Sequence record: LC768500.1
DNA length: 64,000 bases
Reading direction: 5' to 3' (one strand)
In this document: positions 22,059 to 60,249 of the stretch, piece after piece
Layout: each line of letters starts with the position of its first letter
How positions within the stretch are numbered: position 1 is the stretch's first letter
The notes under the pieces: generated by a model
The model's input: the letters and a program-made list of their open reading frames with translations, nothing else
The model's database searches: none
Told to the model about the DNA's origin: nothing
Position numbers and translations under genes: made by a program

Positions 22059-22982
22059 ATGCCTATCATTATCGTTCCAGTTAGCGGTGGGGTAGAATCT
22101 ACCGCTTTACTCCACAAAGCCTTACAAGGTGACAACGAAGTTCATCCCGTATACGTTGCTGTCAACGGCGACCCTAGATCATCGGTATTTGATTTAACCG
22201 CAGCCGAACATATAGTGAATTGGTTTGAAGAACATAAAGGCGGTTACGTTGGGAGATTAAGACCCTTAACGTATATGATCAATCCGGTTTTCTTTCATCT
22301 CCATAACAATAACGAAATAGAAAACACCCCGGCCAATTATGGAGTGACCCAACAATTTCAATTGGTTTACAACATTAGTCTTCTTCGATCTAAATTTTGG
22401 GATTGTAATCCAGGTGTCTGGATTGGTTGGTTAAAGGAGGATGGCAATGAGTTTTCTTTTAACGAATACGATTTCTCGGCAGAGGAGTATAAGGAACTAT
22501 TAAAATTACCCGTGACACTAGGGGCGTTATCTAATATAGATAGAACGTGTAAGCCTTTTAGAACCCCCTTCTGGGAAATGACTAAATCCGATGTTTATCT
22601 AAGCCTGCCTGAAGAGCTTAAAACTTTAGTCGTTCCTAACGGTTCCGAGTATTATAACGGAGACGGTGACTTGGTCAGAACACCTTGGAAAGCTAAAAGG
22701 AAAGAATGGATCAATGCGAACATACCTATTAAAGACAGTTATGTATTTTCAGCAGCTCAGATTTCCCGCATAGGGCGATACGCCGGAAAGAAACTCTTGG
22801 GGAAAGATTTCAATCTCTCTCCTAATTACGACGCTTTAATCGAATTAGTTTATCGAGACTCTCGATGGCACCCTCTCCCCTTTACCAATAAAGACTTCTA
22901 CACCATTTGTAGTGCGAATAACTTAAAAGCCATCGTCAGGGAAGCCCAACACAACATCCCTGCTATCAAACCAATCGGTTAG
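22059..22982 (+). CDS. QueC-like PP-loop ATPase
   Basis: IVPVSGGVESTALL PP-loop; TPFWEMTKSDV; no CxxCxxC zinc motif. Confidence 0.7.
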   Translation: MPIIIVPVSGGVESTALLHKALQGDNEVHPVYVAVNGDPRSSVFDLTAAEHIVNWFEEHKGGYVGRLRPLTYMINPVFFHLHNNNEIENTPANYGVTQQFQLVYNISLLRSKFWDCNPGVWIGWLKEDGNEFSFNEYDFSAEEYKELLKLPVTLGALSNIDRTCKPFRTPFWEMTKSDVYLSLPEELKTLVVPNGSEYYNGDGDLVRTPWKAKRKEWINANIPIKDSYVFSAAQISRIGRYAGKKLLGKDFNLSPNYDALIELVYRDSRWHPLPFTNKDFYTICSANNLKAIVREAQHNIPAIKPIG

Positions 22983-23035
22983 TTGGATAGTTCATCTATT
23001 TTTAGTTCTACATTATCTGGTCGGAGGAACTAAAA

Positions 23036-24172
23036 ATGTTTATTAGTAAACGGGGTAAACTCCGGCCACATAAATCCAATATTGAAATTATCGAACGGAC
23101 TTTCGGTTGTCGGAGATTTGTCTGGAATCAGTTATTAGGATTACATAAAGAGCAATATGAAAAATGGAAGGGGGATAATACTTTAGAAAAACCCAAATTA
23201 AGTTTAACACTGCTTAATAAAGAGCTCAATGAGCTCAAAATAACTCATTCTTGGTTAAATGAAGTAAGTGCCGTAGTTTTACAACAAAGCGTCAATGATC
23301 TTTATAGTGCTTTTCAAGGTTTCTTTAAGAGAGGCAAAGGTTACCCTAAATTTAAATCCAAAAGAGGAATTCAATCTTTTCGGTTTTCAGGTAGTCGGGA
23401 TATTCATGTCGACCACTCTAAAATCAGATTACCCAAATGCAATCATAAATCGGTAATTTCTAAAAACGTTATACTCAACGATCCTTCTTCCTATACCGTT
23501 ATTCGTGATCGGGTTGGCGATTATTTTATTTCCTTTGTTGACCAAATCGAAGAGATTGAACAAGAACCTGAAAGTAAGGGTAAGTTCGTCGGGGTTGATT
23601 TAGGGATCAAATCCTTGGCGGTTATTAAACACGTAAACGGTAAAGTAGAGGAAATAGAAAATCCTCAATTTTATCGTAAAGCTGAAAAACGTTTAAAGAC
23701 GTTATCCCGTCGTTTAAGTAAGAAACAGAAAGGGAGTAAGAATCGGAACAAAGCCAGAATTAAATTAGCTAAACACTGTCGAAAGATTGCTAATCAACGC
23801 AATGACTTTTTACATAAATTATCCACTCGATTAATTACCGAAAACCAAGGGATTAATATCGAAGATTTAAATGTAAAGGGGATGGTTAAGAATCATAACT
23901 TAGCGAAGTCGATTCAAGATGCGTCTTTCAGTATCTTAAAACAACAATTGATTTACAAAGCTAGCCGGTATATTAAACCTAAAGTGATTTGTCTTGTCGA
24001 TCGTTTTTATCCCAGTACTCAAATCTGCTCTCATTGTGGCGTTAAAAGTGAAGTGAAAATCAAACTTCACGTAAGAGAATGGACCTGTGGTCACTGCGGA
24101 ACGCATCACGATCGTGACATTAATGCGGCTACGAATATCCTTAACGAAGGATGTCGTTTAACTACTTCCTAG
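23036..24172 (+). CDS. tnpB: IS200/IS605-type TnpB RNA-guided endonuclease (solo, no tnpA)
   Basis: HTH FGCRRFVWN; RuvC GVDLGIK, IEDLNV, DRDINAA; zinc finger CSHCG..CGHCG. Confidence 0.95.
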   Translation: MFISKRGKLRPHKSNIEIIERTFGCRRFVWNQLLGLHKEQYEKWKGDNTLEKPKLSLTLLNKELNELKITHSWLNEVSAVVLQQSVNDLYSAFQGFFKRGKGYPKFKSKRGIQSFRFSGSRDIHVDHSKIRLPKCNHKSVISKNVILNDPSSYTVIRDRVGDYFISFVDQIEEIEQEPESKGKFVGVDLGIKSLAVIKHVNGKVEEIENPQFYRKAEKRLKTLSRRLSKKQKGSKNRNKARIKLAKHCRKIANQRNDFLHKLSTRLITENQGINIEDLNVKGMVKNHNLAKSIQDASFSILKQQLIYKASRYIKPKVICLVDRFYPSTQICSHCGVKSEVKIKLHVREWTCGHCGTHHDRDINAATNILNEGCRLTTS

Positions 24173-24292
24173 GTTAAGGGTATTTAGTTACCCCTACCCT
24201 TGGTCTGAGGGGACGTTAAGCCTGCGGAGTGCTGCAGTTGGTACGAGGAAGCAGGAAGTTGATTTATCAGCAAGACACATTATCTTTTCGGA
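24150..24292 (+). ncRNA. putative TnpB omegaRNA scaffold plus guide (boundaries approximate)
   Basis: CTACC..GG..GG..TTAAGCCTGCGGAG..GAAGCAGGAA pattern; CCTGC 24221-25 pairs with GCAGG 24251-55. Confidence 0.7.
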
Positions 24293-24299
24293 GTAATCA

Positions 24300-24488
24300 A
24301 TGAAATGCAATCACGATTTTGAAAAACCCACCTATGAATTCTTAAAGAAGGAGTCGGGCTTCTTTCATTGTTTTAAACGAACGTGTAAACAATGCGGGCA
24401 TGTTCACCAACAAGAAGTGAAACGTAAATCAGATGTGCCTCTCTGGGCTAAAGAAGCAGAAGAGGTATTTCACTATCACAAATTTTAG
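24300..24488 (+). CDS. small Cys/His-rich protein
   Basis: CNH..CKQCGH; GGAG SD. Confidence 0.6.
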   Translation: MKCNHDFEKPTYEFLKKESGFFHCFKRTCKQCGHVHQQEVKRKSDVPLWAKEAEEVFHYHKF

Positions 24489-24896: not shown

Positions 24897-24903
24897 GGAT
24901 AAA

Positions 24904-25071
24904 ATGGCTTTCTCTATTTCTGGAAATGGTCTAAAGACAAAGGGTTTAAGGACACCTAATTGCTCTTGGGTTAAAAATGCAAATGATCGATTCTATTCAA
25001 TCGATAATGGTTGGGAGCGGTATATGAAAGCCTCTACAGAAGAGATCATTAGTGGGGGTAAAACGCATTAA
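24904..25071 (+). CDS. 55 aa small ORF (not in track)
   Basis: GAGGA SD; fills the intergenic gap. Confidence 0.45.
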   Translation: MAFSISGNGLKTKGLRTPNCSWVKNANDRFYSIDNGWERYMKASTEEIISGGKTH

Positions 25072-25471
25072 CCTCAGTTCACCTGATTTTGGCATTAACG
25101 ATATTTTGATTAGTTTAATCGTTAGATTCAATACCGATATTCGTTTGAGCAAAATCTTCAGGAAGGTTAACAATAATGATGTTCCTTCTTTGTTTAACAA
25201 CAGCGACTTCGTAAAGCATTACACTCAGCGACCTCATATAGAAAACGGGTTATTGAAATATAACGGTTGGACAGTGGGGGTGGGTCGTCCGCTAAAAATC
25301 CAGTCTTTTGATTGGAGAGTGTATGGGTCTGAGGGATTTAACGTCATAACCATTCCCAACCCAAAACCTAAACTAAAGATCCGGTTTACAAGAAGCGATA
25401 AACCAGGCTACGTTAATTTTGTTGTTAAAGAACAACCAGGGCTTAACGAATGGGAGAAAGTTTATGAGTAA
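25052..25471 (+). CDS. hypothetical protein
   Basis: 139 aa ORF in operon. Confidence 0.55.
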   Translation: MGVKRINLSSPDFGINDILISLIVRFNTDIRLSKIFRKVNNNDVPSLFNNSDFVKHYTQRPHIENGLLKYNGWTVGVGRPLKIQSFDWRVYGSEGFNVITIPNPKPKLKIRFTRSDKPGYVNFVVKEQPGLNEWEKVYE

Positions 25472-25967
25472 TCGGGGATTATCATCGAGTCCTTATAAGA
25501 GCAGACTCGAGAAGAAAAAGAAAGATAAAAAGAGAGCACGTATTCTTGGAGGCCCTAAACTGAGAGGACGTAAAAGCGCTCAACAGAGAGTACAAATAGA
25601 TTCATTCCTGGAAAGAGTTACTGCCGATGCCGAATCATGGGCGGAGCGACAAAAGACAGAAGAGTGGTTAAAGAATCCGCTTTATCCCTATTGGCGTAAG
25701 GATCCCTTCGAGATAAGACTCTCCGGGGTTATTTCTCCTCCTGCGTTTTCCGGTAAAGACTATCGAATGCTTTCTGAAGCGCTTAAAAATGTTGTGTTGA
25801 CTAAAACTATCCCCAGTGCCTCTGTGGAAGCACTGAATGGTTCCGCTAACCGACAAGAGAGCATTTACAAATCATTCTCTTTTTATAACCATAAAGAGAT
25901 CGATCTCCGGGACTATGTTAAAGTCCACGGTCGCCCACTAACTACTAACGGATTCCACCATGGCTAA
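25464..25967 (+). CDS. basic hypothetical protein
   Basis: ATG at 25464 overlapping the upstream stop. Confidence 0.6.
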   Translation: MSNRGLSSSPYKSRLEKKKKDKKRARILGGPKLRGRKSAQQRVQIDSFLERVTADAESWAERQKTEEWLKNPLYPYWRKDPFEIRLSGVISPPAFSGKDYRMLSEALKNVVLTKTIPSASVEALNGSANRQESIYKSFSFYNHKEIDLRDYVKVHGRPLTTNGFHHG

Positions 25968-26424
25968 ATCTATTTGGAAACCGGGTGTTAAAATCACTCG
26001 TAAAGAAAAGAAAGCACTTCGTCGTTTAATGCCTCATCCTAATAAGGGTCGGAGACACTACCAGTGGCGGGTAGAGAATACCCGTATTAGTCGTATTATG
26101 AAAGACGTAATAAACGACGACGGAACTCTGAATATCGTCAACGTCGCTAAACGTACCACGCGGGTTTCGGATAAACTCACGATGAAGCGGGAATTTATTT
26201 ATACCCTACCGAACTCTTCGGACGAGAGAAATATTCAGGCTTTTCGTCCTCGTCTCATGGAAGGATTTTCCGAGTCAGATAAAGAACGATTCAATGAAAT
26301 CTGCCGTGAGGTACTCGAACAACAACTTATCGATGGGTTAAAGAACAGATTAACTGCTCGAGAGATAGAAGGAGAACATCTTCGTGGTCAAGCCAGTGAC
26401 GTATCGTCAGTTCCTAAAGAATAA
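25960..26424 (+). CDS. hypothetical protein
   Basis: 154 aa, coupled to upstream gene. Confidence 0.6.
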   Translation: MAKSIWKPGVKITRKEKKALRRLMPHPNKGRRHYQWRVENTRISRIMKDVINDDGTLNIVNVAKRTTRVSDKLTMKREFIYTLPNSSDERNIQAFRPRLMEGFSESDKERFNEICREVLEQQLIDGLKNRLTAREIEGEHLRGQASDVSSVPKE

Positions 26425-31405: not shown

Positions 31406-32050
31406 ATGGCAACTCCACGTAAAAAGAAACCCGCAACAAAAAACCGCATGACTTTCGAACAAAAACGTCTGTCTGAAATCATTAAGAAAGTCTATCACGA
31501 GCTCTATTTTGTCGGTGCATCTTTCTATAAACCTACGGCGGTTAACGCCAATAAACTCTTCTTGGGGGCGCAGGGCAAGGAAGTGCATACCGCCAGGAGA
31601 ATTCTATTAGATCATTTGATCAGCCTTAAGACGAACTGGCCTTTATGGGTTGGGTGTTTCTTCAATACCCCTAATGGAATCTCTGTAGCTACCGCAGACT
31701 CTTTATGGGAAAATGAGACGATGTTATCCTTCGGGGGTCAGTTTCATAAAAGGATCGATAGTATCGTGGATGGAATTATCGAAGCAGAGGCTGATGCTGA
31801 TTGCACTCGGGAAACGTTGATAGGATACGGGTACTTCTTTAGTCACTGCGATGTCTACAACATGTCCGGGACGGACGAACGTTTAGTAAAACTGATGCTC
31901 CCCTATATGGATGGGTATTTGGCTAAAGAAGTTAAACCAGAAGACGTCGTCGTTAGCACAGACCTTTTGATCGAATCAATAGTCAAACGCGGTGGGGTGG
32001 CTAAAGATGGCAAAATCGAAGAATACATCGAGGTGTCGGAGGAGTGGTGA
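31406..32050 (+). CDS. hypothetical protein
   Basis: TTTAGGAATAAACATCATG leader, 214 aa. Confidence 0.75.
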   Translation: MATPRKKKPATKNRMTFEQKRLSEIIKKVYHELYFVGASFYKPTAVNANKLFLGAQGKEVHTARRILLDHLISLKTNWPLWVGCFFNTPNGISVATADSLWENETMLSFGGQFHKRIDSIVDGIIEAEADADCTRETLIGYGYFFSHCDVYNMSGTDERLVKLMLPYMDGYLAKEVKPEDVVVSTDLLIESIVKRGGVAKDGKIEEYIEVSEEW

Positions 32051-39300: not shown

Positions 39301-39808
39301 TCTGCACTTAGGTGATCCTTCGATCATCAAATACCGTAAGCAGTTTAAAACGGTAAAGGAGCACGATGAATTTATCGCCGATACGATTTTGGTTAAACCT
39401 CGTGATCACGACGTGCTAACCATCGTGGGTGACGGATTCATTAAACCCGAATCGCTGTTCATCCTGAAGAAATTCCCGTATAAGAAACATCTTATCCCAG
39501 GGAATCACTGTATGGAGAAAGGCGTTAAAGTTACTGATCTCGCTGCTTTCTTCGACGTTGTTACCGGATCGTTTAAATGGAAGAGTGGGTTCTTCGTATC
39601 CCATGAACCTCAGCATCCTAATCATCTCCGAGGCCGCATCAATATTCACGCTCATTTGCATGATAAAGTAATCGAAGACGAACGTTATATCGGAGTGTCA
39701 TTAGAACAAACCGGTTATCGTTTAATCCATCACGATGAGATCTTATCTGGTTCTTATCGTACTTATCGCAAACCAACTCTTGAAGACCATTTACATTTAG
39801 GAGAATAG
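39275..39808 (+). CDS. calcineurin-like metallophosphoesterase
   Basis: GDLH, VGD, PGNH, SHEP, HAHLH. Confidence 0.88.
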   Translation: MTARYFAGDLHLGDPSIIKYRKQFKTVKEHDEFIADTILVKPRDHDVLTIVGDGFIKPESLFILKKFPYKKHLIPGNHCMEKGVKVTDLAAFFDVVTGSFKWKSGFFVSHEPQHPNHLRGRINIHAHLHDKVIEDERYIGVSLEQTGYRLIHHDEILSGSYRTYRKPTLEDHLHLGE

Positions 39809-60159: not shown

Positions 60160-60249
60160 AACCAAGATTCCTATTATACGTTAAAGAATTTTGGATCTAT
60201 ATCACCGTCTTGATGCACTAACCATAATCTTTTTAGGAGTATTAACATC

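Follow-up and report, generated by a model that had tools for sequence, protein, structure and literature searches.

How can a tnpB gene persist in a virulent phage, and apparently move between such phages, when TnpB is understood as a helper that prevents the loss of IS200/IS605 insertion sequences (IS) after excision by their transposase, TnpA? The question is raised by a TnpB-omegaRNA cassette at positions 23012-24278 of the window, i.e. the stretch of 64,000 nucleotides from record LC768500.1 that was analysed. The source is Klebsiella phage phiKp_32 (251,460 bp); the window is 100% identical to the record, and window positions equal record positions minus 124,000. phiKp_32 is a lytic jumbo myovirus with 95.9% identity to phage Miami (PMC10581060). 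Since the record already annotates the open reading frame (ORF) as 'tnpB_2: IS200/IS605 family element RNA-guided endonuclease TnpB', it is not new that this locus encodes a TnpB. A first-pass annotation, made from the letters alone, had proposed that the gene and its omegaRNA are a candidate system for RNA-guided homing or phage competition that spreads without a transposase. Following the results below, the cassette is almost certainly mobile and free of TnpA, and sequence comparison suggests (with a probability of roughly 0.6) that it behaves as a homing endonuclease gene of the free-standing kind, resident in a virulent jumbo phage.

The cassette, its empty sites and its guide

The cassette is a 1.27-kb insertion. 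Five relatives (Miami, KPN8, YC1, BUCTxx100 and VB_ZK_P1) lack it at the syntenic site, and their flanking sequence is ~88-96% identical to the window where aligned, which provides the empty-site relatives that the first-pass annotation had called for. In the first four of these the empty allele reads ...AGTTCTAC / ATTATCTTTTCGGAGTAATCA / ATG, with the target directly after TTCTAC; that of VB_ZK_P1 is diverged (ATTATTTGAATGGAGTAGTCA). The 20 nt that follow the scaffold in phiKp_32, where a repeat copy had been said to take the place of the guide, are identical to the empty alleles of those four relatives at 20 of 20 positions, and double as the native upstream region and ribosome-binding site (RBS) of a 62-aa gene. 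The presence of the nuclease gene differs between otherwise collinear, near-identical genomes, as is characteristic of homing endonuclease genes. Other matches to the guide, which the first-pass annotation had suggested looking for, were found neither among 185,579 bacterial and archaeal species genomes nor in IMG/VR, and the single match in JGI metagenomes is a chance occurrence within an unrelated GC-rich gene. The features of the locus are:

22985-23011, +, resident promoter-like motif (T-run, then CTAC); phage backbone, identical in the empty sites of KPN8, Miami, YC1 and BUCTxx100
22998-23036, +, perfect 10-bp inverted repeat TTTTTAGTTC / GAACTAAAAA, arms 22998-23007 and 23027-23036
23008-23011, +, CTAC, resident phage sequence and putative target-adjacent motif (TAM)
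23012-23018, +, left copy of the duplicated ATTATCT (one copy in the empty site, two in the occupied one)
23019-23035, +, element-borne leader GGTCGGAGGAACTAAAA with a GGAGG RBS, homologous to the leaders of sister copies (consensus AGTCGGAGGAACTTAAT)
23036-24172, +, tnpB (tnpB_2), intact RuvC-type nuclease gene of 378 aa, by Pfam and alignment with ISDra2
24100-24278, +, predicted omegaRNA scaffold, overlapping the 3' end of tnpB
24221-24257, +, conserved scaffold core CCUGCGGAG...GCAGGAA, within the omegaRNA
24258-24271, +, small terminal stem GTTGAT/ATCAGC, within the omegaRNA
24271-24278, +, right end CAAGACAC, conserved scaffold terminus
24279-24298, +, guide-encoding flank and right repeat copy ATTATCTTTTCGGAGTAATC
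24300-24488, +, downstream phage gene (62 aa), conserved across all relatives, whose upstream region is the target

The TnpB protein exceeds the curated cut-offs of three Pfam families, i.e. OrfB_IS605 (1.8e-29; RuvC), Cas12f1-like_TNB (7.5e-19; zinc-ribbon TNB) and HTH_OrfB_IS605 (3e-8; N-terminal HTH/WED-REC region), and its residues 8-372 align with the ISDra2 TnpB structures 8exa/8h1j (E 1.8e-60). As had been read from the letters, the three acidic residues of RuvC and the zinc finger are in place: the D-E-D motifs (GVD 186-188, IED 275-277, HDRD 358-361) match those of ISDra2, and both CxxC pairs of the zinc ribbon are retained (CSHCG at 331, CGHCG at 351). The nuclease is intact in its motifs. 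It is under purifying selection, the ratio of nonsynonymous to synonymous substitution rates (dN/dS) being 0.13-0.18 between the phiKp_32 protein and its closest relatives, and 0.09-0.22 across ten TnpB pairs.

No tnpA is found among the 274 annotated features of LC768500.1 (which name tnpB_1, tnpB_2, ligA, rnhA, hslU and folA), no HUH...YxxQ pattern occurs in stop-to-stop frames of at least 90 aa across the whole 251-kb genome, and the fetched stretches of the relatives carry no transposase annotation besides TnpB. The absence of tnpA claimed earlier is thus upheld, and neither the phage genome nor these stretches hold a full IS605/IS607 element, with tnpA and ends, elsewhere.

The 106 non-coding nt 3' of the tnpB stop (24173-24278) are conserved at the DNA level in sister copies and even in phage EL, whose TnpB is only 51% identical to that of phiKp_32. 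Seven sequence types of the core were each folded separately, because RNAalifold on MAFFT alignments misaligns the variable inner stem between types (and returned two invariant stems only); all seven share one nested-stem architecture, i.e. an outer CCUGY/RCAGG stem round an inner hairpin, the sequence of which varies by type with its complementarity kept. The conservation and the common fold support the omegaRNA scaffold proposed for the 3' end of tnpB. No Rfam match reaches its gathering threshold anywhere in the window; RAGATH-18 (RF03064) matches 24221-24257 with 29.8 bits (E 0.0016), below its threshold of 44.9, the outer stem and conserved loop letters agreeing and the inner stem being much shorter than that of the model. 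The GTTGAT/ATCAGC stem, which had been taken to replace the usual right end of the IS, is present but is not conserved in sister cassettes.

The cassette is indeed bracketed by the repeats first described, ACATTATCTGGTCGGAGGAA (23010-23029) and ACATTATCTTTTCGGAGTAA (24277-24296), identical at 17 of 20 positions, and the other listed elements, including the 53-nt spacer between the stop of the upstream ORF (22982) and tnpB, are likewise where they were said to be. On either strand of the 251-kb genome, the 16-mer is matched with up to 3 mismatches at no more than three places, namely the guide, the left junction and one other; chance is therefore far from explaining the pairing of the repeats. 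In the left 20-mer, which is chimeric, CTAC-ATTATCT comes from the phage and GGTCGGAGGAACTAAAAATG is element leader, homologous to that of other copies. The upstream repeat thus reads as having arisen by recombination between the resident motif and the element leader, with 23012-23018 as the likely junction (at maximal extension the ATTATCT duplication is 9 nt long, ACATTATCT from 23010). As the leader with its RBS is conserved between copies, it is carried by the element; the captured phage promoter of the first-pass annotation is correct for the T-run and CTAC, but with these alone being resident the promoter would be a hybrid.

A hairpin had been reported as missing from the left end. A perfect 10-bp inverted repeat does straddle the junction, enclosing it together with the RBS and the A of the tnpB ATG (DNA fold z = -3.6; 0/200 shuffles equal), but it is not a transposon end, since its left arm is phage backbone that the empty sites also contain. 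The right arm reads CTAAAA where the leader usually has CTTAAT, a change that looks like an adaptation to pairing. Possibly the repeat blocks or silences tnpB translation on read-through transcripts.

Insertion sites, junctions and flanking motifs

phiKp_32 holds a second copy, tnpB_1 (record position 119897; 63.5% identical), and TnpB copies are found elsewhere in VB_ZK_P1 (three, the third of which was not located), BUCTxx100 (one) and Miami (one); KPN8 and YC1 have none at 60% identity or more. In a large protein collection there is a tight TnpB clade (P0002-P0016, 61-85% identity), and all its contigs with comparable flanks match Miami-like phage backbones. The next relatives are ~50% identical (EL-like phages), then 45%, and those in IMG/VR (at most 44%, plus one 60% fragment) were unusable for junctions. 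With every locus (L numbers below) mapped on phiKp_32, the cassettes occupy at least 13 independent insertion sites in Miami-like backbones, each intergenic or at a gene start. phiKp_32 is unoccupied at 11 of the 13, i.e. at all but its own two, and four sites are occupied in two different samples (Miami/L073, L061/L074, L062/L064 and L071/L072).

The right junction is always precise: the scaffold ends in ...CAAGAC[A/G], followed by one more nucleotide and then phage sequence. The left junctions vary, with duplications that span 0-9 nt (2-9 nt at eight sites), one large duplication and target deletions:

phiKp_32 copy: duplication of ATTATCT
tnpB_1: duplication of CT
ZKP1-1: duplication of ATTAT
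ZKP1-2: duplication of TT
BUCT: duplication of TAAGTAGTT
L059: duplication of CAATATT
L061/L074: duplication of GAGGAAAT
L062: duplication of GTTAAAGAA
L066: duplication of 111 bp
Miami/L073: target deletion of 22 nt
L071/72: target deletion of 43 nt

The outer left ends of the 13 copies are mutually unrelated, and the element sequence between junction and ATG ranges from 4 nt (L061, which uses the RBS of its target gene) to ~155 nt (tnpB_1), being 17-24 nt in the phiKp_32 copy. A source for the long leaders (tnpB_1, BUCT, ZKP1-2) was sought in phiKp_32 and the fetched loci, and none was found there. A Y1 transposase makes no target duplication and requires conserved hairpins at both ends. Conserved subterminal hairpins of the IS605 type at both ends were not found across the 13 copies, and the short duplications, the 111-bp duplication and the deletions differ from insertion 3' of a target motif without duplication. 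The variable left junctions argue that TnpA is not their maker. Such a pattern is what illegitimate or homeologous recombination, together with break repair, leaves behind, and not what a Y1 transposase does, which fits the lack of tnpA, the lack of room for a left end in the phiKp_32 copy and the unconserved right-end stem.

Two kinds of flank lie 5' of the target in the empty alleles, with class 1 reading C(T/G)AY (5 of 5 sites) and class 2 RYG (8 of 8):

Class 1 flanks: TCTAC (phiKp_32 copy), ACTAT, TCGAT, CCTAC, CCTAT
Class 2 flanks: TTATG (three times), AAATG, CTACG, ATACG, ACGTG, TCACG

The background frequencies of the two motifs are 1.6% and 5.4%, respectively (post hoc and indicative only). 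The pattern requires both the register of CAAGAC[A/G] plus one nucleotide and the larger set of sites; a guide starting directly after CAAGAC was tried and rejected, as it gave no flank consensus (TTCT, GACT, TCGAT, AAAT). L060 (distant backbone) and L065 (complex locus) offer no clean empty-site comparison and were left out of the classification. The TnpB proteins are mosaic, and the flank class goes with how residues 1-175 cluster and not with how residues 176-378 do: L059, L061 and L074 combine a tnpB_2-like C-terminal half with a tnpB_1-like N-terminal half, and have a class-2 flank. In structures of ISDra2 TnpB the TAM is read by the N-terminal WED/REC part. The co-variation of the flank class with the half that reads the TAM argues for the flank as a working TAM, and for persistence only of those insertions whose empty allele can be cleaved.

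The excluded locus L065 (1700-1770, ~330-420) is peculiar in that its guide region and its own left flank are reverse complements of each other (AGTCTTTAGCCGACGAA and TTCGTCGGCTAAAGAC, respectively); in its TnpB, the N-terminal half is only 41-46% identical to all others, the C-terminal half 88% identical to tnpB_2.

Several insertions lie at a recurrent motif. ATTTTTTA-N3-4-C(T/G)A(Y)ATTA(Y) occurs in 11 copies in phiKp_32, all on the + strand and all intergenic (in the window at 23008, 50508, 58655 and 63835, all +; seven more elsewhere in the genome), often followed by GTGTAAAC...TTTTTAGGAG...ATG. It is termed promoter-like because the early promoters of jumbo phages that encode their own RNA polymerases are similar, conserved AT-rich motifs of ~10 nt (PMC7598289), and it is not called a host-type promoter because a sigma-70 scan gave no promoter match at the motif. 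Probably it is a cassette made up of a phage promoter and a 5' untranslated region. The leaders of L059, L066, tnpB_1, Miami and EL bear the same motif, and of its five strict copies (CTAYATTAT) in phiKp_32, four have a cassette inserted in some genome (record positions 22075, 73789, 147008, which is the tnpB_2 site, and 204687). In class-1 elements the TAM CTAY lies inside the motif, and the cassette splits CTAY/ATTAT, leaving ATTAT(CT) on both sides. In class-2 elements at the motif (Miami, L071) the left crossover lies in the motif and the right end at the next downstream RYG, the intervening 22-43 nt being lost.

The closest relative of the phiKp_32 tnpB_2 is L058 (85%), the leader of which (ATTATCTTTTCGGAG / GAATTAAATATG; L058 2982-3003) consists of the first 15 nt of the right flank of the tnpB_2 site fused to the element leader. 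This is the product expected of recombination between the 17/20 repeats (an excised circle or a tandem junction), and it suggests that L058 descends from an element once seated at the tnpB_2 site. The predicted circle or tandem junction of the cassette would be CAAGACAC-ATTATCT(TT/GG)TCGGAGGAAC, and the right junction of L058 would read as the right end followed by ATTATAGAAGTAGTGG.

Decay and mutual overwriting of cassettes are also seen. In L064 (GCA_008916925.1) the gene is broken into 124 + 254 aa, and another omegaRNA type has taken the place of its 3' part. The new right end abuts CTAT/GAAACAGG within the remnant of the older scaffold, and two right-end remnants lie in tandem.

Several other loci with an empty counterpart in the window are of interest in themselves. 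Positions 60174-60188 (TTATAC/GTTAAAGAA), upstream of a Cpn60-like gene, are the empty site of a cassette that is intact in L062/L063 and is the decayed one in L064. Positions 31905-32028 are the empty site of the L066 cassette, the 111 bp being found on both of its sides in L066; the left copy and the gene upstream are 87% identical to phiKp_32 and the right flank 96%, and the 87% left flank may be a co-converted donor flank. At 39435-39650 the TnpB cassette of L070 (P0012) substitutes ~215 nt, beginning at a native-looking RBS (TTTAGGAAAACAACATCATG); its right end abuts GCTCATTTGC, before which phiKp_32 has TCACG. Right ends of the ...AAATATGGGACAG / ...ATATGAGACAG type contain an ATG (L071 4225-4260; L009 3735-3760). 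In L071 this ATG is in frame with the downstream gene, whose GTG start and RBS the insertion deleted, and the cassette may supply the gene's new start codon.

Proposed homing and its alternatives

Upon co-infection with a cassette-free relative, TnpB-omegaRNA would cut the empty allele, CTAC+ATTATCTTTTCGGAGT..., or alternatively the phage's own deletion product after recombination between the 17/20 flanking repeats. Repair of the break from the occupied genome would copy the cassette in (homing); otherwise the competitor would be disabled. TnpB requires a TAM-proximal seed of ~12 nt. The occupied allele would be spared, as the left junction after CTAC pairs over 7 nt and mismatches at 8, 9 and 16 (13/16). 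New sites would be reached rarely, through homeologous recombination of the element's promoter-like leader with a resident CTAYATTAT or through microhomology, and only insertions whose right end abuts a TAM-preceded sequence would persist. For this specific route (recombination via the promoter-like motif or microhomology) the odds seem somewhat below even. Spread without a transposase, as first proposed, is itself supported by the 13 sites with their TnpA-incompatible junctions and by the TAM-like flank that tracks the N-terminal half of the protein.

A number of points weigh against homing. As to RNA expression, cleavage and biased inheritance, the explanation is drawn from sequence only, and the TAM classes were derived from the same 13 sites that were used to test them. 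A co-conversion tract round the cassette was not found in 100-nt windows against the five relatives, the cassette flanks keeping an identity of 96-100% to KPN8 and Miami as far as the junction itself, and the exact phiKp_32 insertion is known from one genome only. The cassettes diverge far more (dS 0.5-1.3) than the backbones (3-5% at the nucleotide level), by which the donors must be unsampled; given the low dN/dS over these distances, the cassettes form a pool that is old, diverse and constrained in function, and that is passed among backbones of recent origin. TnpB cuts 15-21 nt from the TAM, and cleavage alone therefore leaves the exact position of the right end at the TAM unexplained; this position is attributed to selection. 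Insertion into a staggered TnpB cut is a conceivable origin of the left duplications, but it does not position the right end beside the TAM either. Finally, a study of chimallin, which defined the nucleus-forming phage family, treats Miami as a distant relative of RAY, and it is therefore likely that Miami-like phages form a phage nucleus; if so, TnpB must be imported to reach phage DNA.

Whether TnpB in these phages serves to spread the cassette or merely to harm competitors is a matter of emphasis. A domesticated weapon that cuts the empty allele of co-infecting relatives (interference competition), with copying of the cassette incidental, would equally account for a guide that matches the relatives' alleles, for the purifying selection and for the TAM compatibility, and the PhiPA3 intron HNH nuclease is reported to act in this way between nucleus-forming phages (PMC11620839). 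This is compatible with homing and does not exclude it, but as the whole explanation it is unlikely: the cassettes are patchy (absent at 60% identity or more from KPN8 and YC1), and their 13 different sites, their decay (L064) and their mutual overwriting are the behaviour of a selfish element, not of a fixed phage function. Considerably less probable is a non-autonomous IS200/IS605 element (IS1341-type) that TnpA of the host or of another element inserts in trans, the phage being a mere carrier. TnpA inserts 3' of a short motif equal to the TAM, which would explain the recurrent motif before every right-end flank, and the distant IMG/VR relatives L014 and L015 retain a strong right-end hairpin. 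Against this, the phage has no tnpA, the 17-24 nt before the ATG leave no room for a left end in the phiKp_32 copy, the outer left ends and the terminal right-end stem are not conserved, and the duplications (2-9 nt and 111 bp) and deletions (22-43 nt) are foreign to Y1 enzymes; moreover, all relatives of at least 61% identity with examined context lie in jumbo-phage backbones, not in bacterial genomes.

Slightly more improbable still is a passive cassette, shuffled solely by recombination at the promoter-like motif, with nuclease and guide as relics. Left junctions within a repeated motif, four of whose five strict copies are occupied somewhere, and the mosaic structure of the cassettes agree with it. 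However, the dN/dS of 0.09-0.22 over dS up to 1.3, the intact catalytic motifs, the omegaRNA stems that stay complementary despite differing sequences, and the 5' flank class that tracks the TnpB N-terminal half would not be maintained in a relic. At the other extreme, homing could be part of something larger, i.e. a self-sufficient, transposase-free class of mobile elements peculiar to Miami-like and EL-like jumbo phages (probably nucleus-forming), for which the motif is the landing pad and contains the TAM, the repeats allow excision or the formation of circles, and the omegaRNA is re-aimed at each empty site, the whole acting on phage DNA within the infected cell as RNA-guided gene drive and inter-phage weapon. 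This wider proposal is tentative, and the odds run somewhat against it.

Neighbouring genes and known systems

Gains and losses of genes between the relatives cluster around the cassette (22059-22982 and 24900-26000). A 307-aa 'Rossmann-fold' gene is missing in BUCTxx100 and VB_ZK_P1, and its 'queC-like' label in the first-pass annotation could not be substantiated, Pfam giving no match in the protein; a 131-aa gene is confined to phiKp_32, Miami and YC1. BUCTxx100 (OR529409.1; loci L005, L008 and L022) was deposited as a Stenotrophomonas phage, and its identity to the Klebsiella phages is about 94-96% in every compared region, so that the host label deserves a check. The gene adjoining the tnpB_1 site, just outside the window, matches Pfam Acb1, an anti-CBASS nuclease family (L059 2029-2496, L065 1927-2394, phiKp_32 record 121422-121889), and is annotated as 'RNA ligase' in KPN8.

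In the literature searched on TnpB and jumbo or nucleus-forming phages, the papers listed gave only passing mentions and no account of a TnpB clade that lacks both transposase and ends and varies in its presence among virulent phages; a cyanophage preprint describes a host-identical tnpB in one phage and speculates on its role. With the ISDra2 TnpB (IS200/IS605 OMEGA) the phage proteins share the family, a full-length alignment, the RuvC motifs and the zinc ribbon, as well as a guide taken from the DNA just beyond the right end and a short motif 5' of the target. Unlike ISDra2-type elements, the phage cassettes lack TnpA and subterminal hairpins, leave variable duplications or deletions, have a phage-type promoter-like leader, and reside and diversify in virulent jumbo phages. 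The helper has apparently outlived its transposon, a whole clade without transposase or ends being found at no fewer than 13 polymorphic sites in near-identical virulent phages. The two putative TAM classes on recombinant TnpBs moreover offer a natural domain-swap series for TAM engineering.

Promoter-early-stem-loop (PeSL) cassettes of T4-type phages are also bracketed by copies of a promoter motif, which can recombine, possibly via circles, and so redistribute the cassettes between intergenic sites. PeSL cassettes are not known to carry a nuclease or guide, and the motif of the phiKp_32 type differs in that it also contains the class-1 TAM. TldR (PMC10705468) is likewise a transposase-less TnpB relative kept with a guide RNA, but it has lost its nuclease residues and has a fixed guide against a promoter, whereas the phiKp_32 protein keeps all catalytic motifs and takes its guide from the flank; domestication of the TldR type was accordingly ruled out here.

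Should cleavage prove true, the cassettes would exemplify, in nature, persistence by RNA-guided homing alone, linking homing endonucleases to OMEGA systems in a manner that a 2026 review (PMC13565253) puts forward in theory only, as 'non-restorative transposon homing' into co-infecting phages or plasmids. The same review reports that TnpB, without TnpA, facilitates the spread of an IS605 insertion in a plasmid population (PMC13565253), although that case concerns a complete IS605 on experimental plasmids, whereas the phage elements are natural, have lost TnpA and both ends, and occupy many sites. Lytic phages that differ by single cassettes would then be a tractable system for RNA-guided gene drive and phage-phage interference and, if they are nucleus-forming, for testing the access of an RNA-guided nuclease to DNA inside the phage nucleus.

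The free-standing homing endonuclease genes of phages (T4 seg/mob; the PhiPA3 intron HNH) have in common with the cassettes an intergenic nuclease gene with its own expression signals, presence or absence among near-identical phages, and a target in the nuclease-less allele at the point of insertion, the expected outcomes being homing or exclusion of the competitor (PMC13565253). The difference is that the target of the phage TnpB would be read by RNA, with a guide that is rewritten automatically by the flank on which the cassette lands, and that self would be told from non-self by the interruption of the TAM-target unit, so that no protein-DNA specificity has to evolve.

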